DNA of 64,000 nt from Syncephalis fuscata S228 (Eukaryota > Fungi > Zoopagomycota), in assembly GCA_025786725.1 (NCBI GenBank), contig JAHLTZ010000042.1:62001-126000 (forward strand), given 5' to 3'. The notes below the pieces were generated by a model. It was given only the letters and a program-made list of their open reading frames with translations. It was not told the DNA's origin and made no database searches. Within the stretch, counting starts at the first letter, position 1. Each line of letters begins with the position of its first letter. Positions 19,129 through 44,258 of the stretch are shown here, in pieces. A program made the position numbers and the translations under genes.

Positions 19129-20133
19129 GTAATAATCAAATGATTATCAAAATTAATAAACACCGTTTAAATATAGCTGCTTATTATTTGATTAATAAGA
19201 TAAAACTATTACAACGCAGATACGTGTATCATATTAAATTATACTAAATTGTATTGTTTTTTAAATGTTATAGCATTCATTGTTACTATTTCGCATATTC
19301 AATAACTTGGTGTTAAAGCTTAGCTATATCATTACCAATTGGCAATCCAAATTAATCACCAATACTATTATCATATGATTTGCATCGAATTATCAATACG
19401 CATGATTAGCTTGCGAATAAACATCCGGTCCTGCTGATTTCAAGTAACAATTTCAATTGATATTCTTACCAACAACTCAGGCCCTTTGTAAAATAATTGT
19501 TAATTGTTATCAACTATGTAACTTATTGCAAAGATATTATTTACCTTAATAAATAGAATAATACTCATACTAATTGCTAAAAGAAAAGAACAAATTATAA
19601 GTCTAAATTCTTCTTAATTATTTTTAAAGTTCATTTATTATAAAACGAAATTATTATCTACTATATCTACTATAAATCATTCGACTAGTTAACGTTGCTA
19701 GTATGCTTATTATTTTACTTTAAAATAATAGCAGTATGTTATTATATATCTTATTTAGTTTATTAAGTAAATAAAAAATAAATCAACGTATTGTAGTTAG
19801 CTACATTTAATATCGCGACATTGACATTGCTCATTTAACAATAATATCAACTGTGTATTAACTATTTAATGTGCTTTGGAGTCAAATGACTATGTTGATA
19901 ACATTTACGCAGCTGAACTACAAGTTCATTCTATTGAAGATGAAGTTGGGTGGTAAGTTTTATTAATGATCAAATCAATACATTTATTGTCATTCGAGGG
20001 TCAAATGATTACATTTATAAATATCCACACATTTAAACCACACATTATAATACAAATAAAAATCAATTATATTGAATTATAATGACATTGTACTGTTTCT
20101 TTTTGAATGCTACAAAATTACATTAGTATATTA

Positions 20134-23100
20134 AATTATAATAAAGTGAATAAAATTGTGATGAAAATTATAGTAAATAATCAGTTTATTAATATAAATA
20201 TGAATAGAAAGTGTTTTGTATTAATATCCATTCGTTGTTATTTGAACTAACTAAACATTGCTTAAAATGACAAAGTTTGATTTGATGGTAGTAAAAGTAT
20301 ATGCTTTATTAATGGTGCATGATTTTCAAGTCCTGTTTACCATTAATTACTAGTCTGAAGTTTATTAGGCCATCGGCTGTCTGAAACTATATAATTGCTA
20401 TTGGCCTTGATAGCAATTTCTGATAATAAACTATTAACAGCTGTACGACAAATCCATCTAATTTGTTATCAGCTGCTACTGTAATTACGATGTTAGTTGT
20501 AATAAAGGCAGAAATAACAATAGTATATCTTTTTTAATACCATTGCGTTTACTAAAATACATCGGAATTTAAAAGGAAAGTGCAAGTATCGAAAACTTTA
20601 GCCGTGCATTTACATGAAAAAAGTCTTCAATACTTGTACGTTCCAAATCCATCCTCTGCGGCCCTGTAATGCATAGGGTAAAACAGGTTATTTTTAATGC
20701 AAGTAATTAATGCATAGTCTATAACTATTGGTCGTCATACTATTAGTCGCCTTATCTTTGTTGCAGACTTTATTTTTATACAATAAAATACCAATTTAAT
20801 TTAATAAAACCATCAAGTCTAATTGATATAATTAGTTAATGGTATACGGGTGGTTACTATTTAAATAATAATATACAAAATGTATATACGGATATTAAAT
20901 TTGGACAATGCGATTACGCATCACTAAATTAAAGTCATTTTGCAATAGGTGCACGCCATTTGCTTTCCGGTTATTCCGCCTTCCTTGCATTGCTAATAAT
21001 GCTTTTGGTACACTCGTGTTTGTCCAACTCAGGCAAATAGTACCATTTATAAATATATATTTATTGCCATAAAACCATCTGCTATCTATCCGTAATTATC
21101 TTGTTTTCTCTATTTATACTGCTAACTATGAAGTCGTTATATCTTCTACTTATCTCAGCATTGATGGTCAATGCTGCTTCATTGGAGAAACGAGAAACAA
21201 GCGAGGCTGACGCAGCTGTTAATGTCGATGCAAACATCCAGCAGCTAACCAGTCTTACACTTAATAATCGGTAAGCATTTATACTGTTGTAATTTCCACA
21301 CTTACATATTAGAACAGTGTTGTATGGGATCGATTGAATGAAATGACATCAAAGTTTGGCTCACGTCTTACTGGCTCGAAAGGATTGGCGGATGTAAGTG
21401 GCGTGCAAATTGCTTATAGTCAACTAAATGAATACCGATAATTGCTAGTCAACAAAGTGGATTGTGGACCAAATGAAAGCCGATGGCCTTAGCCCAACGC
21501 TCGAGGGAGTCAAGGTCAAGCATTGGACTCGAGGACGTGAATATCTTGTGCATGTCAATGTTGAAGGAGCGCCAAAGGGTCAGCGTGATATTAAGCTGAC
21601 CACACTAGGCAGATCGGCTGCTACCTCACCTAACGGCATTGTAGCTGATATTGTTGTTGTGCGTAACTTCGCTGAGTTGTCTAAGCTGGGCCAGCAAAAT
21701 GTACACGGTAAAATTGTACTTTTTAATGAACCATGGCAAGGCTACGGCGCCACTGTTGCCTATCGTCTGCGAGGAGCCCAAGAAGCGGCCAAATACGGTG
21801 CAGTGGCCGTAATCATTGCCTCAGTTACGCCTGAATCGTCAAGTGATACTCTGCATACCGGATTGACTCTGCCAGCATCGATACCAATTGCAGCTATTAC
21901 ACGAAGTGATGCACGCAATTTTGCTGCTTTGTATAATCGTGCTATAAAAGATCCCGCTAAGTATAAAGTGCCTCGATTGTTTTTTTATACCGAATCGCAT
22001 CTTGATCCCAAAGAGTATGATGGCTACAACATTGTGGTTGACGTAAAAGGCCGTGAATCGCCTGAAAAAATTGTTTTATTGGGTGGACATATTGATTCGT
22101 AAGTAGCAATATGATGGAACATTAAAAATGTTTATTTATTGCATAATCTAGATGGGATATTGGAGTCGGTGCTGTTGATGATGGTGCTGGCGCTTTCACT
22201 AGCTGGGAAGCATTACGGGCTATTGCTCGCTTGCCTCAACGACCTAAGCGTACCGGTAAGTAATAGTCTACTTTTGTTTTATCTACTAATGTTATTTGTA
22301 GTACGACTTGTTTTATGGGTCGACGAAGAGCAAGGAAATGCTGGTGGAAATGGTTATGCGGCTGCTCATGCCAAAGAATTAAAAATCATGTCATGGCACT
22401 TGAGACTGATCTTGGCAACTTTGAACCAGCTGGTATAATATTTTCGGGAAGCAATAATGCAGCTAATATTTTGAAATCAATTGGTGAAAAATATCAAAAG
22501 CCTAAAGTTGGGCAGTTTGCCGGTGATGTCGATGTCGTGTGTAAGTTGATACCTACTTTTACCAATAAACATTGACATGGTTGTATATGAATAATAGCGG
22601 GCGATACAGGTGCCGATATTGCACCGCTTTGCAATGCCGGTGTGCCTTGTGCTGGCTTACTATCGCGCGATCCAATTACCGGAGAGCTCCAGGAATCAAC
22701 TATGGCTACTTTAATGTTCATCACAGGTAGTTATTTAAATTGTTTATTGTTTATCTGTTAATTAACTATATTGACTATAGCCATGGTGATCAGATGTCAT
22801 TTTTGAAACCAGAACAATTGGCCAAAAATGCTGCTGCATTGGCTATTTGGACCTATGCTGTAGCAGAACAAGCTGTTGATCTACCTCGCAGTTAATTGTG
22901 CAATTAACGAATAAACTGAATTATCAATTGCAATTTATTTCAACAACAATAAGCATAGATTAATACTGCTATTCATGAATTTGGCCTAAAAGTGTAGCTC
23001 AATTATTCTTATAAGCAATAACTAATAGATTTTGGCATTAATATTAAATTACAATTAAAGGAAATAATAAGCGATACATGTCATAATATACAATTAAATT

Positions 23101-23152
23101 ATTGTATTTTATATTAATGAATACGTGCATAATAAAAGAGAATAAACGTTTA
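20134..23152 (+). repeat. Left arm of ~3.0-kb inverted repeat (promoter, M28 gene and 3' flank)
   Basis: Reverse complement of ~36676-39693, near-identical including introns and about 1 kb of upstream DNA. Confidence 0.95.
21128..22895 (+). CDS. Secreted M28 metallopeptidase (carboxypeptidase Q/PGCP-like, PA domain), copy 1
   Basis: Signal peptide MKSLYLLLISALMVNA plus LEKR. Motifs FGSRLTGS, WTRG, PA domain, GGHIDSWD, DDGAG, DEEQG, ETDLG and YFNVHH...D. Two apparent 1-nt deletions (~22382, ~22685) relative to copy 2. Confidence 0.9.
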
Positions 23153-23533
23153 ATTCACTTTGCATCTTTAATATTAATATAAAAAACTAAAACAACATAA
23201 CATACAATTATTGACACAAATTCCGAATAACTCGTAATAAAAATAGGGCCAATCAACAGCAATAATGACTATCGAATTTAAAGATCCGCATCCAGTCATC
23301 TATTTTAACAAATTACATGTGCCTTCCATACACGCACACACACACACAAGGCCATTCATTCGCCAATACATTGAAGTACGCACCTCGTGTTGCTTTTACT
23401 CTCCTTTCATCATTTATAATCTCCTTACTACAAGCTACTATCCCTTCTACTACTTTTACTACTCCTACTACTGTTATCTTTTTATTATTCATATCTATCC
23501 TAGTGTTGTTGCTGTTACTATTTTACTTTCAAT

Positions 23534-25086
23534 ATGGCTCATGTAAGTGCTCATCAAGCAAATAGTAATGATGATGATGATAATAATAATGATGACATTG
23601 ACGCGTCCTATTTACATCTATCTTGTATTTATACTATTAATACGAAAACCAGCGTATTGGTGCTCGTAGAAAGAATTCAAAGAAGGGCTACAATTCACGA
23701 TTATGGTCGTGGGTAAGTTATTTGCTGTTATTTAACAATAGCTTACAATTTAAACTGCTTTATTTAAACAACAATTGACTATCTAATAACAACAACAACA
23801 ATAATAATAATAGGCGCCTCAGGCTCTGGACGTACTACATTTGTGAATACGCTTTGTGACAAGCAAGTAATTGAGCACAGAGAACCAGATACAACTGTTA
23901 CTGGTGTTCAAATTCGCCCAATCACAGTCGGTACGTTTATTAATGATTGACAGTAATTGACACTTATAGTTGATTAACAAAATAATTTATAACATGCAAT
24001 AGATTTGGAAGAAGAGGACATCAAGATTAATTTGACAATTGTAGATACACCAGGATTTGGTGACAGTATCGACAATGAAAGTAGTTTCAACGATATCCTT
24101 AGGTATACCGAGAAGCAGTATGACGATATTCTGGCCGAAGAATCACGTATTAAGCGTAATCGTAAATTCCGTGACAGTCGTATTCACGCCCTCCTCTACT
24201 TTATTGCCCCAACAGGTCATGGGTAAGTACAACTGAGCTATATGCACACTATAATGACGATTATACTGATGGGTCTATGTATGCGCTATTTTGAATGTTT
24301 ATGACATAGATTACGTGAATTGGATATTGAACTAATGCGACGACTTGGCCCCCGTGTCAATGTTATCCCAGTCATTGGCAAGGCTGATTCATTTACTCGT
24401 AAGGAATTGACCGACTTTAAACGCCGTGTTATGGAAGACATTGATCATTATAAGATTCCTATTTATAATTTCCCTTATGACGATGAGGAAGATGATGACG
24501 ACACGGTTGAAGAGAACTGCGAATTGCGCAGTCTACTTCCATTTGCTATTATTGGTAGTGAAGAAACCACGGACACGGACGAAGGACCCGTTCGTGTTCG
24601 TCGCTATCCATGGGGTACGGCCCATGTTGAGAATCCAAACCATTGTGATTTTGCCAAACTGCGTTACGCTCTACTATCAACGCATTTGACCGATCTTAAG
24701 GAGATTACGCACGACTTTTTGTATGAAAACTATCGTACAGAGAAGTTGAGTCTAGGTGCTGAAGATGAGGAGACTGAGTAAGTTAAATAATAATAGTAGT
24801 GGTAATATAAGCTAATTTGTTATCAATTACTTGCATATAGAGATGAAGAGGAAGAAGATGAAACGACATCTCAAGTAAGAATCAAGGAAGAACACTTGCA
24901 AGCGGAGGAAGAAAGAGTAAGTAGATTAAAACTATAGGACTAGATTGTAATCTAATTTAATACTATTTAAAATAGTTACGTGAAAAGGAGCTTCGCGTTC
25001 AACGTGAAATTTCAGAGAAGCGACAAGAATTACTGGCCAAGGAAGAGGCACTTCGTTCATTGGAGGCCCGCCTTACCAAGACGTAA
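23534..25086 (+). CDS. CDC11: Septin, Cdc11-type
   Basis: Polybasic RRKNSKKG, QFTIMVVGASGSGRTTFVNTLC (G1 with Arg as in Cdc11), DTPGFGD, GKADS, RRYPWG, LYENYRTEKL and a C-terminal coiled coil. Confidence 0.85.
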
Positions 25087-25279
25087 TGCTTTTTACTTTC
25101 ATTCGTCGATTCTTCTCTTTAATTGGACAATGGCAACACAAACGTCTCAGCATATTGCTATTAGTATCGATGTAGATGATGCCAATAGGATCATGTATAC
25201 ACACACACCTGCACACATTGATTCACTTTGAATATAAAGGTTTTATCTTCATTCTAAATCATAATAATAATATAATGAT

Positions 25280-26627
25280 CTACATCTTTTTAACGAGTGT
25301 AAATGGAAGTAGCGTGCCAAAGGGTAGATGCTGTACAACGGGGAATTTGCCCAATACTTCCGCTTGATACATACGAAGCATACCAATATTCACCTTGGAC
25401 CAGGTTGGTACCATAGCAATATCGTTTAGTACTGGTGAATGTTCGTGGAATGGACCAGATTTAACCTAAAGCGAGCTATGATTAGGTGTAGAATAATAGG
25501 CAACAGTGTACTTACGGTATGAATAACACGTATACAATCAAAATACATATAATCGTCGGCTCCTTCGTCGACCATCGATTTATTTAGAATGGACAATGGA
25601 CGATAGACCGATTGATCTGATTAAATTAGTAATTATTTTAATAAAATGAACCGTCTATTTACCACGTAATTGGGCACTTCCCCAATAATAAGGTAGGAAT
25701 TGAAAATCATCTAGGCCCCAGACACCATGACTGCCAGCCGGTTCAAGCGAGTAGTCCTTTTGTAATCTCCGTACAAGGCGTAGATAGCTAAGTATAGTAA
25801 TTGCATTAATTAATAGCATTAGCGGTAGTAGTAAGAGCAGTTTAATTACCGAGTAAATAGTCTCATAACAATAGCTATTTCGTCCTTTTCTTCTAACAAA
25901 CCAATACCTCGTAAACAGCATAGCCAAGCCACAAATGCCAGTTCATGTCCACTACCATAATCAATACGCGTACCATTGCCAAAAGATGTGGTAAAATAAG
26001 CGACAAGATCATCTAATGCCGGTGATAACGATGATGGCAATACATCAGCTAATAAAGAGACTGAGCGCTATAGTTGTTATATCAGTATACACTACATCGA
26101 AATATGTATTAAATTAATCAGTTACCTCTTCTAAACGTGTTATAAATGAACGAAATGCCTTATTACCAAATCGTTGTGGTGTAGGTAGTGGTGGAAAATC
26201 ATCAATCCACGTATCTAATTCATCCAATAAACTAACAAGGCGTAGTAACATCTATTTATAATAAGATGGTGTTATATAGATTAAAGCATCAGATAGAGAA
26301 AAGTAGAATAAAGCCTACCGTTGATTCCTCACAAGGATCCGATATACGACGATTGAGTGCACATGTGTTTAATTGTTTAATAAAGTGTAATAGGCGTGTA
26401 TAAGCTTCAGACTGTTGCCAAGTAGCCATATCCACCTGGTTATGAATACGTTTTGTAGGTGCCGTCCATACTAGGGTGTCTGGAGTAGTCGACGGGCTGT
26501 TGTCGTTGTTGTTGCTACTACCACTACCGTCATTACTTGCATTCTTATTGCTATTAGTTAAATTGCTAGTAGTAGTAGCAGCAGTAGTAGTAGTAGGACA
26601 ACTAATACGCGTCGGTAATTCAGACAT
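25280..26627 (-). CDS. Phosphotyrosyl phosphatase activator (PTPA, Rrd1/Rrd2 family)
   Basis: Motifs [55 protein letters not shown] and [11 protein letters not shown]. Confidence 0.94.
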
Positions 26628-26811
26628 GTTGTATATAGATACGGGTGTGTACAATAATAGTAAGTAACGAATAAGCAATTCAATAAAAGAAAGTAATAAC
26701 GCCAATGGTGCTTTTTTATTAATAATCTTAATTATATTGAAATAATTAGTTGATTTCCTTATCACATATAATTAGTTCAATACACTGAAGTGTAGATGCT
26801 TTTACACGATC

Positions 26812-27861
26812 ATGTTATGCGTTGAATGTGGCCGTCCAGCCAACACCCTTTATACAGAATATAGTAAGGGCAATATTCGACTGACTCCTTGTGTAAGTTG
26901 TAATAGTAGCGTGTATTTGGCATCGCTACCGACAAAGCAATCTCACTATTGTCAATAGGAATTCTGTAAACGTTTTGTCGATAAATATGTCGAACTAGAC
27001 TTTGTCATTATTTTCATCGATCTTTTACTGCATAAACCGCAGGTATATCGCCATCTATTGTTTAATCGGCTAGAGTATCATGATAAGGGATTTCATGTAG
27101 GTAGTTGGTGGTATAGCAACTATAATAGGATTAACTAATAGTATTCTTAGCCCAGTATTGTTAAGCTAGGCGTGCTACTTGTACTGTTCGACGTGTGTAA
27201 GTTATTTTATTTTGATTAACATGTCCAAGTGTTTATGAGTGACACTTAGATATTCGTTGGTATCGTCTTGAACAATACTATGCCAGTGTTATTCCGCATT
27301 TTTTTCAACTTAGTGCATTGACACAATATATCTATTTGTTATTATTATGCACCATAGGTGGGTAGACAATACATTTGTTATAGAAGTGCTTATCTATATT
27401 AATAGAACTGGGCGTATTTCACGCGACAATTCGCTATATGGTGTGGCTATTATACGCAAAAAAACACCCCATTATAAAGTAGGATAGCATGTACAATTTA
27501 AACAAAAGACTTTTAACACCAGTTGAACAGATACAACTATCTGTCGATGGCTCTGATCATTTCAAGCTTTAGCAAGTTACTGCTTATTCTTATGGTTATT
27601 TGGGAATATTCACGTTTAGAATATGCCCGACTACTTGGCCTATTTGAAATTACTTCCAATTTAGAAGCTGTTTCCGGTAATTAATGACACAATTTCAATT
27701 TACACTGCATTCTAATTGCATTCTGCTTAGTATTTCTAGACTCTGGTCTAACCATTTCATTGCCAATTCTTTTTGTTAGTGTAGCAGTGCGTTGGTTAAC
27801 TCAGTATATATTCATTCAATTGACAGGGAATATTTTGCCATTTGGTTTGATTGCTGCGTAA
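26812..27861 (+). CDS. ARV1: Arv1 sterol/GPI-related ER protein
   Basis: MLCVECGRPANTLYTEYSKGNIRLTPC..C...DKYVELDFVIIFIDLLLHKPQVYRHLLFN is the Arv1 homology domain. Confidence 0.93.
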
Positions 27862-27888
27862 TAAAATGATTATTTTTGTCGCTTATAC

Positions 27889-30800
27889 TCAGTCCTCGAA
27901 CGAATATTCAAATGGCTCTGGTGGTGTCAAATCTTCATCGCTGGCATAAGCATCGGCATCATCTTCTGTGGGGCGCACGGCTGAGGCTATTATAGTTGTG
28001 GATAAGAGCGGAGTGAGCTGCTATACTCGATATAGTTACTTCAACTTACCGGTGGGGATATCCACGGATAGTAGCTCCTCTGGCTCGCCCGGACAAGTGT
28101 CGTGCATCATTAGAATACCGCCAAGTTTATTCTATGGCGTATAATCTAGTTTAGTCTATTGCTTTTCGTAATGTGTTTATTAGTACCTTTTTGACAGGAA
28201 GATAGCGGGAATTATCGTTGAAACTGACAAATCGCCATTGTGTTGGCAATACACGGGACATATTGACAAGTACTTCCGAATCGGCTTCATGTTTATCCTG
28301 TTCTACCGTCTATACAATACATTAATCATTTCCATTGATTTAATAGATAATAAACGTACCTTTTTCACCTCAGTGGATGGTCCTGCTTCATCGGCTTCTT
28401 TAATCTCATCCTATTTGCATCGATATTACGCTCGTTAGATCGCCATTTATTAATTGGCTATATTTCTACACGTACCACCTCCATAGATTGCTCTTCTGGA
28501 GCCTTTTCCTTTTCTTGCTTCTTGGCACGTGCTTTTGCCTTGGCTGTGGTGGATAATACTGCGGTAGCAACCTATTATCGTTTAGTATTTTATCGCCATT
28601 CTATACTATCACATTACCTTTTCTACAACATTTGCCGTAGGTGGCTTTATCTCAGGTGGATAGGCAAACAATGAAGCTTTAGCATTTGAAACAAAGTCGA
28701 ATTTAGGCATCTAATCAGCATGGTATTAGCTATATAGCCATGGCCTCTACTACTTGTACATTACCTGTAGATCCTTGTTCAAACCAATAAGTGCTGTTGG
28801 TGTCAAGGATAGACTCATAAAGTGCATCAATGGATACCAGTACCAAAACTGGGTGAAAATAGCTAGACCAACAACAGCTGGCATATTGATGTGACCAGAT
28901 TGAGATTGAAGTGAAATAGTTGTGTTACGGCCACCTAGCAAATAAAACGACAATAATCAGCTAATTAACAATTAAATGTGCAATGTACCCACCTGCATCG
29001 ATAATGCCCTGACCAAGCACTGCACCAAACTTAGCTACTGGATCCTGATGACGTTCGGAAATGATCTTTTCATACATTTTACGAATTCTAGCCGTCTAAT
29101 CAAACAATGGTAATAATGTTAAATACAATTAGTGATAATAAAAGCCATGATGGTTGATTATATACCTTTGGATTCATAGAATCATTTTGTTGCAATAGCA
29201 CCATAGCCAATGAAATCAGCGCACCTTGACGGACAAAATCGACCGAGTCCTTCGTCATAGGTTCCAGAATAGCAATGGCATCCTGTCAATGTACTAAGTA
29301 TCGTTTCGACTATTACAATCATAAATACTTACATTCATGCCTGTTCCAGCACAAGCAATGCCCAAGGCAAATGTAGCGCCATATCGAACGTGTGGATTAT
29401 AACTCTCAGACAACAATTGCACCAAACGTGGCACTTGCTCTGGTGTGCGGAACAAAATGAATCCAAGTGCAGTCACGGCAGCACGACGAACATCGTCGTT
29501 AACATCGCTGACGGCCATATGGAGCAATTGTCGGATGGCTTTGTTATTACCGGTGCCACAATAGGCCATGGCAATGGTGTAAACGGCACCATAACGTAAG
29601 ATCGTATCCTATACGCCAATTGTCATATATACCTTTAAATAATAAAATAAACCTACCTTATCACTCTTAAGCTGTTCAATTAAACTGTCAGCCTCTTCTT
29701 CTTTGCCAAACATCATCAACGCCACACCAATAGCAATACCACGGATGATCTTCTCGTGCTGTGTATCACGTGCATAATGCAGTAGCTCATCGATAACATG
29801 CTCTGATGCCGATCCCAACATGACTAGACCAATGGATAGACCGGCTGCTTCACCAGCTACGGCACTATCGGCAAATAGTACGGTTTTAATATCTTCGTAC
29901 AAAGCTAGAATAAATACATTTAGCGGACATTTTTGTATCATTACTCGTGTGTTAATTACCTTCATTGCCGGTGGCCATAGCCGCCACACCTAAGCCCAAA
30001 CAGGCACCATGCTGTACAACTTCTTCTTGGCTGTTACGTAGCGCATTTTGCAGATACTCAACAACATCTGTTCCGTGATTGGCATGAATAAGACCCAATG
30101 CATACAATGCACCACCCTCAGAATAGACACCAGTACTATTGGTGCCTTGTGGCAAATAAGGTGCCAATAAATTCAAACTTTCAGTTACATGTCCCTAAAT
30201 GTCTACAGTAAACATCCATGTTTATATATGCACTACTAAATAAACAATACCTTATGGATTACACCGAGACTTGCTGTAGCACTGAACTTGGACCAGTTAG
30301 ATGCACGGGATAGCCATTCAAGATTATCTCTAAGGAAACGATCACTGGTAGTACCGGCATTCATAAGAGCATTGGCGAATGTGACTGCAGTGTGGTACAT
30401 TGAACTACGTGAATCCAATGCATTCTAATATGCTATTAGTACAATGTTTTTTACTGTAGTCAGTTTCCTTATGTTTATTTACCTTTGTATTTTTCAAAAT
30501 AAGTAAATCGGTATGGTTATTGCGATAAAGACATTCTAAATACAATCTAATCGAAACACTACCCGATAGAATATTTAATAAATGTTCAAACCGAATGTTA
30601 TGCTCATCAGCGTCCTACATGACATTAATTAATAACCATTAATTGGTTAATTAACATAGCTTATTTACCTTGGAACGTGAATTTGACAATGTGGTCGATA
30701 CATTACGTAAATAATGCTGTGTTGCACTGCCAACCAAATCAAATGCAATTTGACAAGCAATCAAATAATCGTCCTACAATTATAGAATTAGTATGGCCAT

Positions 30801-31823
30801 TTATCATTATTACTATTACTATTATATATAGTAGTTTTAGTACCTCTGACTGACAAGCAAGTGTACTCAACATGGATGCACATGCATCGCTATCGCCTAA
30901 ATGCAACAAGCATTGACTGATCGAGATGTAGTCTGGCTCAGCTTGTTCATTGAATTTTCGTACTAATAGACCCAGCACCTAAATGACAATTACGATTAAT
31001 TAGAGCCTATCTATTGCTTATTTCATTGTTACTTACTGCATTACGGAACTCAACATTCTGAACCAATGTCATGCAAACTTCCAGTATATAAGGCAAAAGA
31101 TTTGGCGTATTTCCCTTCGTGATGGTTTCCTCTAAATAGTCGATATGCTGCGACTCTAATGCTACACCGATTGCCTGCTTATATTCACCTTCATCAAAGC
31201 AGCGTACAAACATGCGCTGAACAATATCTGCCAATCGCTGGTCCATTTCAGCATTGTTTGATCTTAGTTCAATGTATTTCTCGATCGCTTTCGCTATAGA
31301 TGCCTATTAGTCCGACCATTCTGAACATGGCTATACACATAATTAACTAACCAGTAAGTGTTTCGGTGTATTCTGTATTGGCAGCTGAATCAAATAGATC
31401 GCTTGCTCCCAAAGCAAAAGATAGCGACTCATCATACTCGCCGAGATAGTAATAGACCTTGGAGGCTACCAATGCAGCCAAAGCACGATGAGCAAATCCC
31501 TCATCTTCATGTAGTAGCTCGCTATAGATTACAGCCATCAATAGTTAGTATATGCTAAATAAGCGTCATCATCATTGCGATTGCCGTCATCGCTACCTAC
31601 ATTTTAGCAATATGATCGGCGATCTCTGACCAAAATAGATTGACGATACTATCGAGCTTTTGAAGTGCATATACCCGAAGTTCCGGCTCTCCATCGTCCA
31701 ACAAAGAAAGCACGCCTCCTAAATGAGCAATCAAAATAACACGCGCATATTGTCGGTCAGTTTAAGCGATCGTCGACAATCGAGATTGCCAATCTACTTA
31801 CCGGCAGATGTAATGGCGGCCAT
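27889..31823 (-). CDS. RPN2: 26S proteasome regulatory subunit Rpn2/PSMD1
   Basis: Motifs [37 protein letters not shown] repeats, [27 protein letters not shown] and C-terminal PPEPFEY. Confidence 0.97.
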
Positions 31824-32125
31824 AATCCGTTTACAAGATTTCAGACTTGGTACAAACAAATGAAACGATTGAAATAAGGTCGACAACAGCCGAAGACACG
31901 GTCTGTTGACGTTGGTGTTGGTGGTGGTAGTAGTTAATAGTGGTTAATTGGGGAGAGAGAAGATGAATAATAAACGACTATATTGCTTATTGTGTATTCT
32001 CGATGACGCATTCTAACACCCATCAGTATGTCATTAATGGGATTCGATTGTGATTGAGTCAAATCAAGCTTATAATTAAGCCATGACTTGAGGAAAAAAT
32101 GAAATAACCGCGTTACTTTCTCGTC

Positions 32126-34874
32126 ATGTCGGTCTATGGAATGAATTTACGACTATGGTCTCAGCGATCAATCTTGAACCATTATAGCGTTATTACAGCA
32201 ACGTCTTTAGTGGCAAAAAACCGGACTGGTCTTTTATATCAGTTGTTAAAAAGCGCATCGTCGAGACCTATAAGCTATGGCCGATATCTATCTACTCAAG
32301 CTAATACCGATGATACGGCATCAAATTCACTATCGCCACCATTAGGTAATATAAAACTATAATGATTATAAGGTAGACACTTAATAGAATAGATAGAACC
32401 AAATTATGCACGCCGAACACATAACTGTGGCCAATTGTGTATCAATCACGCATCTCAATCGGTGATTTTATGTGGATGGGTTGAGAGTGTAAGGCAAGTA
32501 CATTGAATTCATATAACACAGTTACATTTACCGTTATTTAGGAAAATATCAGATGGATTGGCATTTGTGCCATTGCACGATCGAGATGGAACTACACAAT
32601 TAGTATTTGAGACATCGAATGATTTGATGGAAAATTGGCCGGTTCTTCAAACATTGAGTGCACAGGATGTCATTTGTATAAAGGGACATGTACGGGCACG
32701 ACCAGAAAATACAGTTAAAAGGGTATAGTCAATTACCAAATTACTAACCTGTGTTAAATTGCTTATTTGATAATAGACACAATCAACAGGTGAAATTGAA
32801 GTAGTGGTCGAGACAATAGAACGACTTAATCAAGCTGTTCATCTGCCATTTTCACCGACTAGTAAAAAGCTGGTTAGTAATTACGAATAACAAATATAAT
32901 GCAAAGTACAACTAAATATGATATATAGCCATCTGAAGAGATTCGTCTTCGACATCGATATATCGATTTACGCCGTCGTACTTTACAAAATAACCTTCGA
33001 CGTCGTTCAGCGATTATTAATGCGGCACGCAATAAACTATTGGAACAAGGTTGGCTATTAATTATATTAACAAAACGCTATGCATTAATTTAACATAATT
33101 ATTATTGTAGGATTTCTTGAAGTGGAAACACCAATGCTATTTAAATCAACACCAGAAGGAGCTCGCGAGTACATTGTGCCTACTAGAAGTCCCGGTGAAT
33201 TCTTTGCCTTATCTCAAAGCCCACAACAGGTAAAAGTCTATAAAGTTTAATGTTGAATTAATCAATAATGAGCATGAATGTATTTAGTGTAAGCAAATGT
33301 TAATGGTAGCCGGCATTGATAAATACTTTCAAGTGGCCAAATGTTTCCGAGATGAAGATTTGCGGGCAGATAGGCAGCCTGAATTCACTCAAGTTAGTTG
33401 ATATAGATACTTTAATGAATATCGCTTACAGTAATGATGCTTAGTTGGATTTGGAGATGGCGTTTGTTACTAAAGAACAAGTAATGTCGTTAATTGAAGA
33501 TGTTGTACAAGCCATGTGGCAGTCTATCCATTCAGACAAATTGCAATTTCGACATATGACATTTGAACAGGCATTAAACCAAGTAGGTTGACTGCAATTA
33601 GTACTGTACTAATATACTAAACTATCAACTAGTATGGCAGCGATAAACCAGATACCCGCTATGATATGTTGGCAAGTATTTATTAATACAAGTTAGTAAA
33701 GTACATTAACTAAATATACAAATAGATTCAGCAAGTACCATCAGCACAAGAAGGCATGATAACTGACTGGCTATGCATTAAACAAGGAACACAGCTACCT
33801 CCTAAAGTATTAGCTGCTGTACGTGCTTCATGTAATCTAAATAGCCACACCAAGGTAATACCAATAAATAGTCATATTCTACGTATAAATAACTGCATTT
33901 ATACAGGGCTTTAAGTGGATTCGTGTATCAAAAGATAATATTGATTCTGTATTGGATCAATATCGTCCATATATCAGCGATGATTCGCCTGCTATAGGCG
34001 ATCTTGTTGTACTTCATCATCGTCCACTAGCTATTACAGTAAGTTACAGCGCTAGATATAATCAGCTAATAATGTGTACTATACAGGGAGACTCTACTAC
34101 TATGGGCCATCTTAGAATTCATGCAGCCCAAGCACTTCAACAACAAGGTAATAATCATCATTATTAGTGTCACTAATACAGTTTATTAATAAATGAATGA
34201 AAATATAGGACTATTAACTATTGATCCACAACGATATGATTTTCTATGGGTGACTGATTTCCCGCTATTTACACTTGACTCAGAAAGTACACGCTTACAA
34301 TCGACACATCATCCATTCACGGCGCCAATTGAGCATGATGTGCCATTACTCTACACTGAACCGGATAAAGTGAGTATACTATACCATTTGAATAGCTATG
34401 AATAACACAGTATAGGTACATGGACAGCATTATGATTTAGTGTTAAATGGCATGGAAGTAGGTGGTGGGTCGATCCGTGTTCATCAACCAGATAGACAGC
34501 AATATATAATGAAAAATATTCTAAAAGTAAGCTTATAAATTAGATAATAGTAATAGTAATGGTAACAATTTATTTAGCTTAATGATGTGGAATTTGACCG
34601 ATTTGGACACTTGCTTAATGCACTTGGTTCAGGCTGTCCACCTCATGGCGGATTTGCCATTGGTAAGATAATAAGAATACTTTATACATACATTTACTTA
34701 TTGAATTTAGGTCTTGATCGTATTGTATCAATTCTGTGTAATGCATCGTCTATTCGCGATGTCATTGCATTCCCTAAATCGGCCGGTGGCAAAGATTTGA
34801 CTGTTGGCTGTCCATCTGCTGTAGATACAGCTCAGTTGGAGCAAGTTGGTTTAAAATTACATCAAACAAATTAG
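32126..34874 (+). CDS. MSD1: Aspartyl-tRNA synthetase, mitochondrial
   Basis: Presequence-like N-terminus. Motifs [69 protein letters not shown] and IRDVIAFPK. Confidence 0.94.
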
Positions 34875-35098
34875 ATACTCAATAGGTCAATTCTATTACC
34901 TTTTGAAATTAGCTCAATAAATCAAATATTTAATACATGTCACACTACTATACGCATCACAAACTATTATTATTATTTATTATAAAACATAGATTTACAT
35001 AATTAATTAAAACAATTATACAAGTATTAACAATTTTATTGATGCTGCATTACTAACACCGTTATAATAAAACTATTGCTAGCCAGCCTTAGTCGCAT

Positions 35099-36323
35099 TT
35101 ATTCCTTAATAAAAAGCTGCGACATGTCTAGCTGCTTTTGTTCATTTCTCCAAATAGTGCCCTGTTCAGTAATAACGCCATATATTAATGAGGCGGGTGT
35201 GACATCGAATGCTGGGTGCCATACGTTGATGCCTGGAGCTGCTACTCGTACTGTATGCAAAATTGGCTTGCCTTGTTCATCTACAGCCAGCGATTGCTCA
35301 TCCGTCAAAGAGGCACCGCGTATATCAGTCAATTCGCGAGCAGATCGCTCTTCAATATGAATGTCTTGACCGCTGCTTAGCTTCATATCAATCGATGTAG
35401 TAGGGCGGCGACAAAAAATGGCACACCATGGTGTGCAGCCAATACGGCTAACTGATAAGTACCAATCTTATTGGCCGTGTCACCATTAGCGGCTACTCGA
35501 TCGGCACCCACAACTACTGCATCAACGCGGCCAGCCTGCATTAATGCACCTACCATCGCATCACCAATAAGTGTGGATGGGATATTTTCATGAACAAGTT
35601 CGTAGGCCGTTAAGCGTGCGCCCTGTGCATAGGGACGCGTTTCTGTGCAATAAGCATGGGATAGCTTATTATCAGCATGTAGCTGGCGAATAATGCCCAA
35701 TGCAGTGCCAAAGCCAGCTGTGGCCAATGCACCAGTATTACAATGAGTCAACACAGAAATAGTATTAACTGTGTTACTGGTGATACTGTTTTTGCGACAG
35801 GACTCAAGCAGTGCTGCTGCTCCGTGCTGGCCAACTTGTTTATTATCAGCCAAGTCGTCCGCTAGCATTTTTTCCGCTAGCATCAGATATTCCTCCACTG
35901 TTTCCTGTACATTGTGGGTAGTTGCCATGGCATTGATATGCCGGGTAAGTATATCGGATGCACGAAATAGATTAACGGCTGTTGGGCGTGAAGTACGCAA
36001 ATAGTCAAATGAAGTTTGAACAAACTTTGAGACGTCACTAGCTTGCTGCCATTCGCCGGCCAAATACCGTTTTTGCAGTTCTACCGCTACTGAAAGCGCG
36101 GCGACAATAGCAATAGCTGGCGCGCCACGGACCTACTCACGATTATTACTCAAGCTTTAGCTGCCGGTCCAATACTTGCCTTCATTTGCTGAATAGCCGC
36201 ATGGCCATCATTCACGCCACTTATCACCTCATAGATACTTTGATAAGGTAGCAGCAGCTGATCCAGTATTTCTAGACCTTCAGCACGCTTATAGCGAATT
36301 GCTTCAAGCGAATTATTTGACAT
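35099..36323 (-). CDS. MRI1: Methylthioribose-1-phosphate isomerase
   Basis: Motifs [65 protein letters not shown] and PAFDVTP. One GC-AG intron and an apparent 1-nt deletion near 35403. Confidence 0.95.
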
Positions 36324-36675
36324 GGTAAAAGAGAAACACAAAAGTACGAGTTGCTGTGCTGTAACGCAGCTGTCGTTGGAAATTTACACTCAATGAAATT
36401 GTATGTCAGCAATATTTCTCAATCATATTTTCACATTTATGTTAAAAATGTTGTAACACTAGCAGTAATGCTTGGCTTATCAGAGTAGCAGCATCAATCG
36501 CGTCAATATATTGATGTTGACGTGATCACTATTACTAACAATATCAATAAAAATCTTTAGTATTATTCATATTCCACTTTTACGGTAAATATTATTCTAT
36601 AAAATAAAGTATTTAGTATTTAATCTACGTCTTTGTACTATTCCTATTTTAACTATGCAATTAAATTTATTACTA

Positions 36676-39600
36676 TAAACGTTTATTCTCTTTTATTATG
36701 CACGTATTCATTAATATAAAATACAATAATTTAATTGTATATTATGACATGTATCACTTATTATTTCACTTTAATTGTAATTTAATATTAATGCCAAAAT
36801 CTATTAGTTATTGCTTATGAAGAATAATTGAGCTACACTTTTAGGCCAAATTCATGAATAGCAGTATTAATCTATGCTTATTGTTGTTGAAATAAATTGC
36901 AATTGATAATCCAGTTTATTCGTTAATTGCACAATTAACTGCGAGGTAGATCAACAGCTTGTTCTGCTACAGCATAGGTCCAAATAGCCAATGCAGCAGC
37001 ATTTTTGGCCAATTGTTCTGGTTTCAAAAATGACATCTGATCACCATGGCTATAGTCAATATAGTTAATTAACAGATAAACAATAAACAATTTAAATAAC
37101 TACCTATGATGAACATTAAAGTAGCCATAGTTGATTCCTGGAGCTTCTCCGGTAATTGGATCGCGCGATAGTAAGCCAGCACAAGGCACACCGGCATTGC
37201 AAAGCGGTGCAATATCGGCACCTGTATCGCCCGCTATTAATTCATATACAACCATGTCAATGTTTATTGGTAAAAGTAGGTATCAACTTACACACGACAT
37301 CGACATCACCGGCAAACTGCCCAACTTTAGGCTTTTGATATTTTTCACCAATTGATTTCAAAATATTAGCTGCATTATTGCTTCCTGAAAATATTATACC
37401 AGCTGGTTCAAAGTTGCCAAGATCAGTCTCAAGTGCCATAACATGGTTATTTAATTCTTTGGCATGAGCAGCCGCATAACCATTTCCACCAGCATTTCCT
37501 TGCTCTTCGTCGACCCATAAAACAAGTCGTACTACAAATAACATTAGTAGATAAAACAAAAGTAGACTATTACTTACCGGTACGCTTAGGTCGTTGAGGC
37601 AAGCGAGCAATAGCCCGTAATGCTTCCCAGCTAGTGAAAGCGCCAGCACCATCATCAACAGCACCGACTCCAATATCCCATCTAGATTATGCAATAAATA
37701 AACATTTTTAATGTTCCATCATATTGCTACTTACGAATCAATATGTCCACCCAGTAAAACAATTTTTTCAGGCGATTCACGGCCTTTTACGTCAACCACA
37801 ATGTTGTAGCCATCATACTCTTTGGGATCAAGATGCGATTCGGTATAAAAAAACAATCGAGGCACTTTATACTTAGCGGGATCTTTTATAGCACGATTAT
37901 ACAAAGTTTCAAAATTGCGTGCATCACTTCGTGTAATAGCTGCAATTGGTATCGATGCTGGCAGAGTCAATCCGGTATGCAAAGTATCACTTGACGATTC
38001 AGGCGTAACTGAGGCAATGATTACGGCCACTGCACCGTATTTGGCCGCTTCTTGAGCGCCCATCATACGATAAATAGCAGTGGCACCGTAGCCTTGCCAT
38101 GGTTCGACAAAAAGTACAATTTTACCGCGGATTCTTTGCTGGCCCAGCTTAGACAACTCAGCGAAGTTACGCACAACAACAATATCAGCTACAATGCCGT
38201 TAGGTGAGGTAGCAGCCGATCTGCCTAGTGTGGTCAGCTTAATATCACGCTGACCCTTTGGCGCTCCTTCAACATTGACATGCACAAGATATTCACGTCC
38301 TCGAGTCCAATGCTTGACCTTGACTCCCTCGAGCGTTGGGCTAAGGCCATCGGCTTTCATTTGGTCCACAATCCACTTTGTTGACTAGCAATTATCGGTA
38401 TTCATTTAGTTGACTATAAGCAATTTGCACGCCACTTACATCCGCCAATCCTTTCGAGCCAGTAAGACGTGAGCCAAACTTTGATGTCATTTCATTCAAT
38501 CGATCCCATACAACACTGTTCTAATATGTAAGTGTGGAAATTACAACAGTATAAATGCTTACCGATTATTAAGTGTAAGACTGGTTAGCTGCTGGATGTT
38601 TGCATCGACATTAACAGCTGCGTCAGCCTCGCTTGTTTCTCGTTTCTCCAATGAAGCAGCATTGACCATCAATGCTGAGATAAGTAGAAGATATAACGAC
38701 TTCATAGTTAGCAGTATAAATAGAGAAAACAAGATAATTACGGATAGATAGCAGATGGTTTTATGGCAATAAATATATATTTAAAATGGTACTATTTGCC
38801 TGAGTTGGACAAACACGAGTGTACCAAAAGCATTATTAGCAATGCAAGGAAGGCGGAATAACCGGAAAGCAAATGGCGTGCACCTATTGCAAAATGGCTT
38901 AATCTGGTAGTGCGTAATCGCATTGTCCAAATTTAATATCCGTATATACATTTTGTATATTATTATTCAAATAGTGACCACCCGTATACCATTAACTAAT
39001 TATATCAATTAGACTTATGGTTTTATTAATTAAATTGGTATTTTATTGTATAAAAATAAAGTCTGCACCAAAGATAAGGCGAGCAACGGTATGGATAATC
39101 AGTAGCTATAGCTATGTATAAACTATTTGCATCAAAATAACCTATTTTGTTTTATGCATTATAGGCCGCAGAGGATGGATTTGGAACGTACAAGTATTGA
39201 AGACTTTTTTCATGTAAATGCACGGCTAAAGTTTTCGATACTTGCACTTTCCTTTTAAATTCCTGATTTATTTTTAGTAAACGCAATGGTATTAAAAAAG
39301 ATATAATATTGTTATTTCTGCCTTTATTACAACTAACATCGTAATTACAGTAGCAGCTGATAACAAATTAGATGGATTTGTCGTACAGCTGTTAGTATTT
39401 ATTATCAAAATTGCTATCAAGGCCAATAGCAATTACATAGTTTCAGACAGCCGATGGCCTAATAAACTTCAGACTAGTAATTAATGGTAAACAGGACTTG
39501 AAATCATGCACCACTAATAAAGCATATACTTTTACTACCATCAAATCAAACTTTGTCATTTTAAGCAATGTTTAGTTAGTTCAAATAACAACGAATGGAT

Positions 39601-39693
39601 ATTAATACAAAACACTTTCTATTCATATTTATATTAATAAACTGATTATTTACTATAATTTTCATCACAATTTTATTCACTTTGATTATAATT
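36676..39693 (-). repeat. Right arm of ~3.0-kb inverted repeat
   Basis: Reverse complement of ~20134-23152. Confidence 0.95.
36935..38705 (-). CDS. Secreted M28 metallopeptidase, copy 2 (frame intact)
   Basis: Same exon-intron structure as copy 1, with all Zn-ligand motifs present. Confidence 0.92.
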
Positions 39694-39899
39694 CAACATA
39701 ATAGCTGTATTAATAGGTTGATTAGTAGAGATTATTACACAATTCAAATAATCAAATGGCTAACTCAAATGCCTTTATATAAATCACGATATCATTCAAC
39801 AGTGTAAAATAAAAGAGAAAAGCACAAGAGAATTCGTATGAATATTCTACGATTATTTCTAAACAAGAGAAAAGGAATGTGTAAAGGAATAAGGGTCAA

Positions 39900-42800
39900 T
39901 TAACGACGGTATGACGTATGATGGTGTTGTTGTTGTTGATTGTTATTACTATGTCCACGATGATGATGACCACCACCTCTACCACCTCGATAATAACCGC
40001 CTCTACCGCCTCTACCACCGCCTCTACCACCACCACCACCACCGCCTCTACCATCACCGCCACTGCCACCACCTCGAGATGAATCAAATCCAAAGTATGG
40101 ATTATTCATTGGTGCAGACTGTTGCATTGAATTCGAGGATGTTTGGGCATAATTAGGCAATGTTTGTCCATAGAAATTAGAATGACTATTACTATTAGAA
40201 TTGGGATTATTGCTAATATTGTTATCATTATTGATGCCGTTATTATTGTTATTACTATTATTATTATTGTTATAATAACCATAAGATGGCTGTTGCCATT
40301 GCGTAGTCGATGGCATCGAAGGCTGTGCCGTTGACGGTGCTTGATTATAAGCGTTATATCCAGTATTCATATTCGTATTATGACCATGGTTATATCCATT
40401 ATAAGATGGCGCTTGATGAGTAGAATAGGACATGGCAGCATAATTACCGGCATTGTTGTTATTAGCATTATTGTTATTATAATTCTGATATTGGTTATTG
40501 CTGCTAATTGTATAAAAAGATTAGTAATAAAATTTAGCTATTTAAGTAATTTTACTTACTAATAGTTATTACCGCCGGCATTATTCATATTCTTGTTATT
40601 GTTATAACCATTGTTATTGTTATTATAATTACTGTTATGGTGACTATGACTATTGTTAGTGTTATTATAGCCACCTCGATTATAGTTGGAACGAGGACGA
40701 GAATATGGATTATTATGACTATTGCCATGGTGTTGATGTTGATTATAGCCATGACCACCTCGATAGCCACCACCACCACGTCCACGTCCACGACCTCGTT
40801 GAGATGCACCACTTGTGACAAATTCAATATCATCTCGACTTAGTGCTTTTGGATCGAATTTGACATTATTCAACAATTTGGCCTTGTATCTTTGACCAGC
40901 TGGCAATTCAATCATATTGTAGGCCACGCTATATAGTAAACAGGTATCATTAGTATAGATATCATTAGTATAGATATCATTGATACTTACGCCAATGCTC
41001 GGTTATTTAATAGATCAGGATAGCCATGCTTTATTAATGGAGATGGAAATGTTGTTTCAGGAATAAATTCCTTTTCACGTGATACCATGCCATTCATGTG
41101 TAAGCTTAATTTTGTATCAATAACAATTGCCTTAACATATGAATAAGTAATTTGTTATTATGTTATATATAATTCTACTTACTTCATCATTGTTTTTTGT
41201 GTAAAGTGCACACAATTGATCATACAATTTATTACGCTTGCCAATCATTAACCAATCTTGACCTGGTGTATTACGTAACTGCTCTTCTTCTGATAGTAGT
41301 GGATAAATAGGTTCCATTGCTTTTAATAAACGAGATTCCTCAATAAATGGCAATAGAATAATAGCTATTTATATCAATTATATTAGTTTCTTTTCTATAT
41401 ATATATATATTAATTAATTAATTACCTTGCCATAAATGCTTCTTGCCATTCATATCAAGATCAAAGTCAACTGGATAGAAATCAATAATTTCTGATTCAG
41501 GATTCGTCATTAAATGATGGAATGCATTTGGAATATGTGATCTACTGGCTGCAGGTAATACGCCCATTAGCTGTTCAACAGGTCGGAAAGGTGTGCCCAA
41601 TTCAAATTGAATGTCAAACGATTCAACATTAACAAAATCGGAGGCAAATGGCGCATAATGATATGGATAGTACCATTTCCACGATGGACAACCTTGATAA
41701 TAATAGCGCAGTACCCAACAAAGGCCTTCGACGTATTTGAAAACAATTTCACGACGGAAAGTCTCGTCCGATAATTCAACACCGAATTTCTGTCGATAGT
41801 AGCGTTCCTTGAATCCAGTCTCCCACATACGTACATCGTCTACTGGTTCGGCATCGCTATCCTCGTCAGCGGCCACGGTGACTGTTGCGCCTGGTGTAGC
41901 AATACCGACTGCTTCTGGCTCCGGTGAGGATTCCATTTTACGTTTCTCGCCTACATGTGGACTATGTGATACGGCCATAGTGCTATCCTCTTGATTAGTC
42001 TGCTCTTCCGCATTATGCTCGGTGGGTGTGGCTGTATCAGCTTCAGTTGCGGGTGTTTGATCAGCATTTAATGCAGCTTTTAGTTTTTGTGCAGCACTTT
42101 GATTATCAAATGGTGCAGGTCCATTACGGAAAGCATTGGCTTGTGGGTTTTGCATATTGGTTGCAAATAGTGGCATTTCACCAGTGGGTGTTGGATCTGA
42201 CGTCATATTACGTGGTGTATTATTACGACTTTGTACTTTACGACGTTTTGCAGCCAACATACGACGTTCTTCACCTATATATTATGAATATTAATATTAT
42301 AAACATTAATACACCATTTATTGTTAGCAATTAATAACTTACGTTCTCGCCGGTCTCGGAATGTTTTATCTTCAATCTTGCCCAATTCCGTAAGTAAATA
42401 TTGGGCACGTGCCAAATTGATCTATTAATTTAGTAAATATTAGATGTGTTGTATTCATAGCCGTTTTACTTACAAATCCATCTTCAGTTACATAACCGCC
42501 CATCAATGGCAGAACTCGCTTCCAAATGGCCACCAAGGCATCCAATGCACCTTCTCGAATCTCCAATGACGGTAAATGTGGCAAGAAATCGTTACCCACA
42601 AAAAAGCATATAAATACCCAGTCATCAATAGCTCGTTCAAAATCGTATGGAAATCCTGCCCCTTCACGTTTTAACTCAATTTCCAAATATTCACGAAGAA
42701 TATTAACGTGTAAAAATATAAATGGCTTATCCATTTCAACTCCACTGTTGCTATTCTTGATATTCTCCTGTTTGTCTGCCGGTGATCCTATTCATATTGT

Positions 42801-44121: not shown

Positions 44122-44258
44122 GATGATAAGAGTAAAGCGCTAATCAACAACAAAAAAAGAGAAAAAGCCTAGTGTAGCAAGTGTAATAGCAATAGTGTTG
44201 AAAAGCAAAGCGTTTCAGTTAAAAAAGATCTTTATTTTTTAAATCATTTAGATCACAA

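Follow-up and report, generated by a model that had tools for sequence, protein, structure and literature searches.

Large palindromes, such as the ampliconic ones of the human Y chromosome, carry genes in inverted arms (9 kb to 1.45 Mb) that stay near-identical over long spans of time through intrachromosomal gene conversion. At a smaller scale, long inverted repeats that contain ORFs serve as breakpoints of inversion, LOH and CNV in Candida albicans (Todd et al. 2019, eLife, PMC6591007). These repeats are 1.7–3.2 kb long and >99% identical, comprise whole ORFs plus intergenic DNA and have roughly 3–94 kb of unique genes between them; NAHR between the arms inverts the spacer, and the inversions were proven by PCR and sequencing (PMC6591007). 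In Drosophila, chromosomal inversions that arose by staggered breaks are bordered by inverted duplicates (Ranz et al. 2007, PLoS Biol, PMC1885836), which are ≤1.9 kb long, about 88% identical on average and often decay (PMC1885836).

The locus described here, in a 64-kb stretch of DNA from Syncephalis fuscata (Zoopagomycota; the window), is an inverted segmental duplication around a unique spacer and probably a passive substrate for NAHR. A gapped local alignment showed arm A (20127–23152, 3026 bp, forward strand) to be the reverse complement of arm B (36676–39700, 3025 bp, reverse strand), with 65 substitutions and 19 single-base gaps (~97% overall identity); a repeat search recovered the same pair as 11–13 collinear blocks of 89–100% identity and as the sole large repeat in the window. 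Judged by the alignment, chance could not have produced a 3-kb match of such quality. A preliminary description of this DNA had placed the arms at 20134–23152 and 36676–39693, correctly recognizing them as reverse complements but underestimating their extent, as the alignment reaches 7 bp further at the outer end. Its account of their contents (~1 kb of upstream DNA, a whole M28 gene and ~260 bp of 3' flank) agrees with ours: in arm A, 1001 bp precede an ATG at 21128, the gene runs to the last base of its stop codon at 22895 and a 3' flank of 257 bp follows, and the genes do face each other, gene A on the forward and gene B on the reverse strand, convergent across the spacer. The arms thus consist of host DNA (promoter, M28 gene and 3' flank), lie on one contig, and represent a real inverted duplication, of an ordinary kind, of a whole promoter-plus-gene unit. 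Arm A has sharp junctions with unique DNA at both ends, we saw no flanking duplication common to the arm junctions, and the earlier remark that there is no transposase or target-site duplication (nor, we add, a TIR) is right for the arms, dispersed repeats lying ~90 bp outside arm A. The arm-to-flank joins are those of the assembly alone, since the public runs yield short contigs, none of which bridges an arm or an arm/unique junction.

The spacer (23153–36675, 13.5 kb) holds six genes and is single-copy in the 29.4-Mb assembly. Pfam searches with exon pieces bore out all six identities previously proposed: a septin (about 23443–25230, forward; introns from RNA contigs), PTPA (25658–26771, reverse), ARV1 (about 26810–27860, forward; Arv1 domain), RPN2 (about 27900–31600, reverse), an AspRS-like class II synthetase (about 32100–34870, forward; class II aaRS and OB anticodon domains), which had been called MSD1, and MRI1 (about 35100–36327, reverse; IF-2B/MRI1), which corresponds to the S. 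fuscata protein P0001, encoded on a contig of 174,049 bp. To the left lie an S9 prolyl-oligopeptidase-family gene (Pfam Peptidase_S9) and two dispersed repeats (together 16479–20038, forward). The S9 gene is part of a 5-copy segmental duplication, with matches in its own genome on contigs C257 (99%), C290 (91–93%), C312 (83–88%) and C350 (80–87%); the two ~180-bp repeats (19668–19849 and 19856–20038), for which the genome gives at least 40 matches, stop about 90 bp short of arm A and have no counterpart outside arm B. The right flank carries an XRN2/Rat1-like exonuclease gene on the reverse strand (provisional extent 39900–44259; Pfam XRN_M at 41418–42260) that is single-copy in the genome.

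The M28 gene is not one ORF: spliced RNA contigs (k-mer depths 580–1450) revealed seven exons separated by six GT..AG introns, and the short ORFs seen in the region are an effect of these 46–57-nt introns together with one-base assembly deletions. In gene A (21128–22895) the exons are 21128–21269, 21317–21393, 21449–22098, 22152–22254, 22301–22540, 22598–22724 and 22779–22895. As assembled, its frame is broken by one-base gaps at 22384 and 22685; these are assembly errors, as the missing bases are present in exact A-type DNA contigs. Gene B (36935–38705, reverse strand) is intact in seven exons, with an open 1458-nt CDS encoding 485 aa. Both genes were thus shown to be intact, spliced and transcribed. 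NCBI models annotated independently on the same contig include P0271 (gene B, 485 aa), identical in length, start and end to our translation, and P0272 (gene A, 460 aa), which was modelled around the two gaps.

The gene B product combines a signal peptide with PA and M28 catalytic domains. On its exons, Pfam places PA (PF02225) on exon 3 (26–30 bits against a cut-off of 23.9) and M28 (PF04389) on exons 4 and 5, which score 19.7 and 19.1 bits over contiguous profile positions (26–123). The M28 domain reaches 70.9 bits (cut-off 21.3) in a 76% identical paralogue on contig C257 (P0121), precomputed Pfam annotation lists PF04389 for both P0271 and P0272, and PDB entry 3iib ("Peptidase M28") matches gene B with an E-value of 8e-11. 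The translation carries the motifs GGHIDSWD, VDDGAG, VDEEQG and HHSHGD, whose HxD, DDG, EE and C-terminal H we take, from general knowledge of M28 enzymes and not from a structure, to be the metal-ligand and catalytic residues. These features fit CPQ-type M28 enzymes, which the gene product also resembles in its length of 485 aa, and JGI calls relatives "carboxypeptidase Q"; outside Syncephalis the nearest relatives, proteins from Mortierellaceae and numerous bacterial or metagenomic ones, reach only 37–45% identity. By sequence, then, the arm genes are predicted to encode carboxypeptidase-Q-like M28 peptidases with a PA domain. The two proteins differ at 11 of 485 residues, ten of them around the PA domain (residues 157–233) and the other a K/N difference at 352 after correction of the gap.

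The M28 family has three copies in the genome, the third being P0121 (KAI9592587.1) on the 289,375-bp contig C257. S. plumigaleata has a single orthologue, P0273, whose locus (L036) shows collinearity across five neighbouring genes with C257 at 61.3–85.7 kb but none with the window, so that the C257 copy is the ancestral one and the arm pair on contig C309 is lineage-specific. The history begins with a secreted carboxypeptidase-Q-like M28 gene at the C257 locus, which was copied with its promoter to C309, where two 3.0-kb segments, inverted with respect to each other, now lie on either side of 13.5 kb of single-copy housekeeping genes. A staggered-break inversion is a candidate origin of the pair, and it would predict a spacer inverted relative to the ancestral order, with a single copy at one breakpoint in the outgroup; the MRI1 contigs of S. 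pseudoplumigaleata, Thamnocephalis and two metagenome relatives are not syntenic here, having no other gene in common with the window.

Divergence between the arms is uneven, being mostly 0–1.5% (about 99.5% identity outside the patches) and rising to 19–22% in small patches. The first, in the promoter (arm A 20655–20765; arm B partner about 39064–39173), has 19% A–B divergence against 0–3% around it; in a three-way alignment with the C257 copy the distances there are 19.4% (A–B), 20.2% (A–C257) and 21.3% (B–C257), with mixed polarity. The second, in the PA domain (arm A 21696–21780; arm B partner 38053–38137), is accompanied by a 3-nt patch at 21924–21926 (partner 37907–37909) and shows distances of 22.4%, 18.8% and 21.2%, respectively. 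Between the arms dS is 0.48 and dN 0.20 in the PA patch, against a dS of 0–0.03 elsewhere in exon 3; the dS of either arm to C257 outside the patch is 0.42–0.52, and dN/dS in the patch is about 0.4. Clustering is extreme: 48 of the 65 substitutions fall within 231 bp, and the longest substitution-free run, 764 bp, was reached by none of 20,000 permutations. Polarity is balanced, arm A agreeing with C257 at 31 sites and arm B at 30. As the arms are as far apart in the patches as from the C257 paralogue, they are old, and the mosaic of near-identical tracts and deep patches points to gene conversion between them, in keeping with the earlier proposal that the copies exchange sequence. The unconverted patches of the C309 copies are equally far from each other and from C257 (dS about 0.5), and repeated arm-to-arm conversion would have wiped out nearly all other differences, a case of concerted evolution. 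We consider it probable that the locus is a lineage-specific, old inverted duplication homogenised by gene conversion, which serves as a passive NAHR substrate and is not a programmed switch.

The mosaic might instead have arisen the other way round, by a recent duplication whose once identical arms later received their patches through short conversion tracts from distant M28 copies. The patches are indeed short (3–111 bp) and contain sub-blocks derived in one arm only (e.g., 21699–21705 in A and 21748–21778 in B), and the public contigs hold an extra M28 variant, ~5% different from arm A at 21870–22450, that is missing from the assembly; lost or unassembled donors could therefore be a source of the patches. 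However, a search of the 29.4-Mb assembly with the promoter and PA patches returned only A, B and C257 and no other donor, the derived states of either arm being unmatched elsewhere, and the read variant is C257-like (underived) at most of these sites and so is not the donor. Moreover, within the patches A, B and C257 are all equally distant from one another, with dS at the level of the paralogue, as old relics predict without calling on two unknown donors, and we regard imported patches as unlikely. Less probable still is that the second arm was made by the assembler, there being one M28 copy on C309, or that the arms were mis-joined or mis-polished. This assembly does have frequent one-base deletions (reads add a base at 19245, 19690, 19718, 19850, 21969, 22380–84, 22591, 22684 and 23682), and arm B as assembled around 22069–22093 was not seen in the contigs, while exact A-type contigs and the unassembled variant are present. 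Yet a duplicated consensus is unlikely to give 20% patches that are in frame and show now one arm, now the other, in the C257 state; DNA contigs of two types occur at similar depth in the upstream region; to judge by the layout, mis-joined haplotypes of a simple inversion cannot give a join of the M28 3' flank to the MRI1 side of the spacer; and neither the spacer nor the right flank has an allelic contig. Should the ~5% variant prove to be the real arm B, the assembly has made the arms too uniform, and the patches stand out less from the remainder than described above.

Under our preferred reading of an old, conversion-homogenised duplication, conversion keeps up the homology that a crossover flip needs, and by established recombination biology crossovers, occurring now and then, would turn the spacer round with no gene lost. 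The preliminary description went further and proposed an actively invertible block, in which the inverted layout is favoured as a safe means of keeping two copies that recombine and crossovers repeatedly flip the six genes and shuffle variants of the promoter, PA domain and catalytic part. Recombination is to be expected between 3-kb arms of such identity, conversion is evident, comparable ORF-containing inverted repeats, with spacers of 11–94 kb, underlie inversions in C. albicans (PMC6591007), and the promoter and PA patches lie 1 kb apart, so that a crossover falling in that interval would give new combinations of the two. Against this, a single orientation is on record: the spacer and the right flank occur once in the assembly, in one orientation, which weighs lightly towards absence of a second, as the public contigs are short and none spans an arm. 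There are also no catalytic variants to reassort, the catalytic motifs being the same in both proteins, and the persistence of old patches implies that exchange is incomplete, not free. Because each arm brings along 1 kb of promoter and the four junctions all lie between genes, a flip changes no gene/promoter junction, and hence no switch function follows; nor is there a site-specific recombinase among the spacer genes. The "safe layout" is moreover a survivorship argument. Active flipping thus found no support, and we find the proposal as a whole improbable; with no recombinase, no altered promoter/gene junction and one recorded orientation, the locus is probably not a programmed switch. It is similarly doubtful, though conceivable, that this is a long-lived "sheltered two-allele" locus, in which conversion would homogenise the catalytic part of a highly expressed secreted peptidase, selection would keep the promoter and PA (substrate-gating) patches distinct, and crossovers between the patches would flip the block and create new promoter/PA combinations.

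As an inverted duplication whose relic patches give away its age although conversion makes it look young, the locus offers a clean natural case in a barely studied fungal phylum, and it shows that arm identity alone would mislead the dating of duplications, or the calling of "recent" segmental duplications, in these genomes. It also documents growth of a secreted peptidase family in a mycoparasite, with one ancestral locus shared with S. plumigaleata and, in S. fuscata, two further copies that are expressed. In practice, one-base assembly deletions mimic pseudogenes, and these, like the unassembled peptidase variant in the reads, affect every gene call in the region. No new mechanism is opened up here, the inversion potential being of the ordinary NAHR kind.

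Set beside the known systems, the arms resemble the human Y palindromes in being inverted, gene-bearing and near-identical by conversion around a unique spacer, but they measure only 3 kb, the spacer consists of six essential-type genes, and relic patches persist in the promoter and PA domain. As with the Drosophila breakpoint duplications, a chromosomal segment is flanked by inverted copies of coding sequence that was ancestrally unique, and no transposable element forms the arms; the S. fuscata arms differ in their 3-kb length, in that both genes are intact and in the identity of about 99% kept by conversion. The C. albicans repeats are likewise fungal, chromosomal and ORF-bearing and surround unique genes, although the S. 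fuscata pair is known in one orientation and its host is a zoopagalean mycoparasite with a haploid assembly; conversely, the age of the duplication and its relic patches, which we could establish for S. fuscata, are not part of the C. albicans study (PMC6591007).

A gapped local alignment of 19501–23700 with the reverse complement of 36101–40300 gave a single arm pair, 20127–23152 (arm A, forward strand) and 39700–36676 (arm B, reverse strand), with 65 mismatches and 19 single-base gaps; the arms reported in the preliminary description are thus real, and their coordinates had been placed correctly to within 7 bp. A repeat search of the 64-kb window also detected this pair, split into collinear blocks of 89–100% identity, and no comparable repeat elsewhere in the window. 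The arm ends are sharp, with unrelated sequences beyond all four junctions; no short duplication common to the junction flanks was found at any of the four, and no tRNA genes that might mark breakpoints were found in 15–45 kb of the window. Pfam searches with exon pieces assigned the six genes of the spacer to septin (+), PTPA (−), Arv1 (+), RPN2 (−), a class II synthetase with an OB anticodon domain (+), and IF-2B/MRI1 (−). In the genome assembly, 29.4 Mb in 371 contigs, both the spacer and the XRN2 flank are single-copy, and neither therefore has a second contig, whether allelic or in the alternative orientation.

Just seven ORFs of at least 200 residues occur in the 64 kb, which is not gene decay. 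The idea of a noisy yeast assembly with broken genes, its short ORFs being frameshift noise, was ruled out by RNA contigs: spliced contigs of the public read run X1 reveal GT..AG introns of 46–110 nt (46–57 nt in the peptidase gene and 72–110 nt in the septin gene). After removal of six observed introns the arm B gene has an open CDS of 1458 nt, encoding 485 residues with a signal-peptide-like N-terminus followed by a PA domain and an M28 domain; Pfam places the former on exon 3 and the latter on exons 4 and 5, with contiguous profile positions. The PDB entry 3iib, "Peptidase M28", was matched with an E-value of 8e-11, and the 76%-identical paralogue P0121, encoded on contig C257, scored 70.9 bits against PF04389, while an NCBIfam search yielded weak M20 matches and nothing else. 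Public database searches were run with single exons or with database proteins; the joined exon models served for local translation and comparison. The closest relatives of this family (P0121, P0271, and P0272) outside Syncephalis are just 37–45% identical among the matches P0123–P0388; among them are Mortierellaceae proteins of ~600 residues and a very large number of "carboxypeptidase Q" proteins from bacteria or metagenomes, Pyrinomonadaceae being one example.

NCBI has models for both genes on one contig, P0271 for gene B (485 residues) and P0272 for gene A (460 residues), and their differences are confined to a divergent patch in the PA domain and to the places where the gene A model was routed around two frame breaks. 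The underlying arm A gaps, at 22384 and 22685, are assembly deletions. Record 14 of run X2 matches arm A with no mismatches over 22322–22682, including the A-specific positions 22386, 22392, and 22446, and carries the extra base; record 24 of run X4 likewise matches arm A without mismatch over 22643–22816, including A-specific position 22724, and also carries an extra base. As these exact A-type contigs restore the missing bases at both sites, both M28 genes are intact; differences between their proteins are limited to residues 157–233 and residue 352, and the catalytic motifs are identical. Contigs add a base to the assembly at 19245, 19690, 19718, 19850, 21969, 22380–84, ~22591, ~22684, and 23682; two of these one-base deletions imitate frameshifts in gene A, with model P0272 bent around both, and one falls in the septin gene. 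RNA contigs over the M28 gene indicate that it is transcribed (k-mer depth 580–1450, with 800–3000 for septin, contig k-mer depth being no gauge of expression level).

The substitutions between the arms are strongly clustered, with 48 of the 65 lying within 231 bp; the longest stretch free of substitutions is 764 bp, a length reached in none of 20,000 permutations. Outside two short patches, in the promoter (20655–20765) and in the PA domain (21696–21780), A and B differ by 0–1.5%, and A differs from the C257 copy by 12–26%; inside them the three distances are equal (A-B 19–22%, A-C257 19–20%, B-C257 21%). Polarity is balanced, A agreeing with C257 at 31 sites and B at 30, so each arm has derived sub-blocks of its own. 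In the coding patch dS between A and B is 0.48 and dN 0.20; in the rest of exon 3 dS is 0.42–0.52 from either arm to C257 and 0–0.03 between the arms, the coding-patch dS thus matching the paralogue-level dS to C257. Positive selection as the main cause of the PA patch was rejected on this paralogue-level dS and a dN/dS of ~0.4, which does not indicate an adaptive burst, and the assembly holds no other possible donor for the patches. On the simplest reading of these sequences, the separation of A and B would be about as old as their separation from C257, and arm-to-arm gene conversion would since have overwritten all but a few short relics. The exchange between copies envisaged in the preliminary description is therefore borne out by a conversion mosaic of patches within a near-identical remainder, but not its reassortment of catalytic variants, as the motifs are the same in both proteins.

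The public reads add a complication. They come from five small 2017 runs holding parts of the window, all as contigs, and none of these short contigs bridges an arm/unique junction. X3 records 16 and 17 represent two DNA types in the upstream region whose depth is the same, as expected of two copies. Over 21870–22450 the exact A type is accompanied by a second type ~5% different (8 differences in 168 nt, 11 in 173 nt), which is seen in both DNA (X2) and RNA (X1) and is absent from the assembly. Logan contigs can be mosaics after bubble removal, which calls for caution in reading them. This variant has the arm B state at 22079 and the C257 states at 8 of 13 listed sites; it is possibly the real arm B, more diverged than the assembled consensus, possibly a further, unassembled near-copy, or the runs possibly derive from another strain. 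Under any of these readings divergence is strongly heterogeneous along the unit (0%, ~5%, and ~20%), which requires conversion events of different ages, and the sharp contrast between the patches and the rest in the assembly may be overstated.

There are three close copies of the M28 gene in the genome, A, B, and the one at C257:79200–81885 (KAI9592587.1), whose CDS is 84% and upstream region 78% identical to the arms. A comparison of 100 kb of C257 with the window revealed nothing in common but the M28 unit, and as the spacer and right flank lack a second copy we rejected C257 as the homeologous chromosome of a hybrid genome. The sole S. plumigaleata orthologue among the matches, P0273 (56% identical to P0121, on a 2.35-Mb contig), lies in a 22-kb neighbourhood collinear with C257 61.3–85.7 kb and not with the window, the collinear genes being a 1062-residue upstream gene, M28, SAGA-Tad1, a 222-residue gene, COX5A, and an M24 peptidase. 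This identifies C257 as the ancestral M28 locus, and hence the pair on C309, the contig that holds the window at 62001–126000, originated within the S. fuscata lineage once it had diverged from S. plumigaleata. The interval from M28 to SAGA-Tad1 is ~8.7 kb in S. fuscata (C257:70600–79300) versus ~0.4 kb in S. plumigaleata (L036:11867–12287), an insertion or expansion beside the ancestral locus. Homology of the arms to C257 spans ~20393 to ~23030, and the arms run 266 bp and ~120 bp beyond these points. As it fades inside the arm ends, the M28 unit is not a discrete mobile element with ends common to all three copies; a short blastn match close to the inner end reflected low-complexity sequence aligned out of register. 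That the arms outrun the C257 homology suggests a local origin of the second C309 copy, with the first as its template and adjacent DNA carried along. MRI1 is the one gene in common between the window and the contigs of S. pseudoplumigaleata (5.2 kb), Thamnocephalis (16.8 kb), and two metagenome relatives, and none of those contigs has an M28 gene within 1.6–2.2 kb upstream of MRI1; S. plumigaleata was not among the matches to MRI1.

The left flank carries a duplication of its own. The S9 prolyl-oligopeptidase-family gene on the left (17000–19400) belongs to a five-copy segmental duplication, with copies at C257:19052–21446 (99% identical over 2.4 kb), C290:169773–172787 (91–93%), C312:143432–146497 (83–88%), and C350:426956–429830 (80–87%). 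C257 therefore holds paralogues of both "island" peptidase genes, ~60 kb apart. The S9 unit, which includes two ~180-bp dispersed repeats, stops near 20030, which places a second duplication boundary right beside the outer end of arm A. These repeats, at 19668–19849 and 19856–20038, are adjacent families with at least 40 matches genome-wide at 70–83% identity and may be MITE-, SINE-, or LTR-like; some are paired 7–8.6 kb apart, inverted on contig C319 and direct on C112. Elsewhere in the window, a tandem three-copy gene family occupies 59571–63394 (spacings of 1440–1621 bp, 67–76% identity). In a metagenome relative (L029:706–1438; JGI 3300044693 contig) a homologue of this family is the immediate upstream neighbour of MRI1, an arrangement that hints at a rearrangement between MRI1 and the array.

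Long, near-identical inverted arms are established NAHR substrates, and a rare crossover between the arms would flip the six genes and lose none. As to active flipping of the block, the other part of the preliminary interpretation, nothing observed shows a past inversion, and the spacer and XRN2 flank have no contig in the alternative orientation; the inverted-repeat observation is confirmed and its interpretation supported in part, for conversion but not for flipping. Nothing suggests a function for flipping either: none of the six spacer genes encodes a recombinase, all four arm junctions are intergenic, each arm has its own 1-kb promoter, and the catalytic motifs are identical. C309 carries a genuine inverted duplication, old and specific to its lineage, of a carboxypeptidase-Q-like gene that is expressed. 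Judging from their sequence, gene conversion keeps the two copies alike, and as a passive repeat pair they are candidates for inversion. Inverted duplications of this kind are already known. In C. albicans, ORF-containing inverted repeats similar in size and spacing to the C309 arms gave inversions (PMC6591007), whereas none was observed at C309, and a staggered-break inversion (PMC1885836), a model that depends on the ancestral order, would give such a layout.
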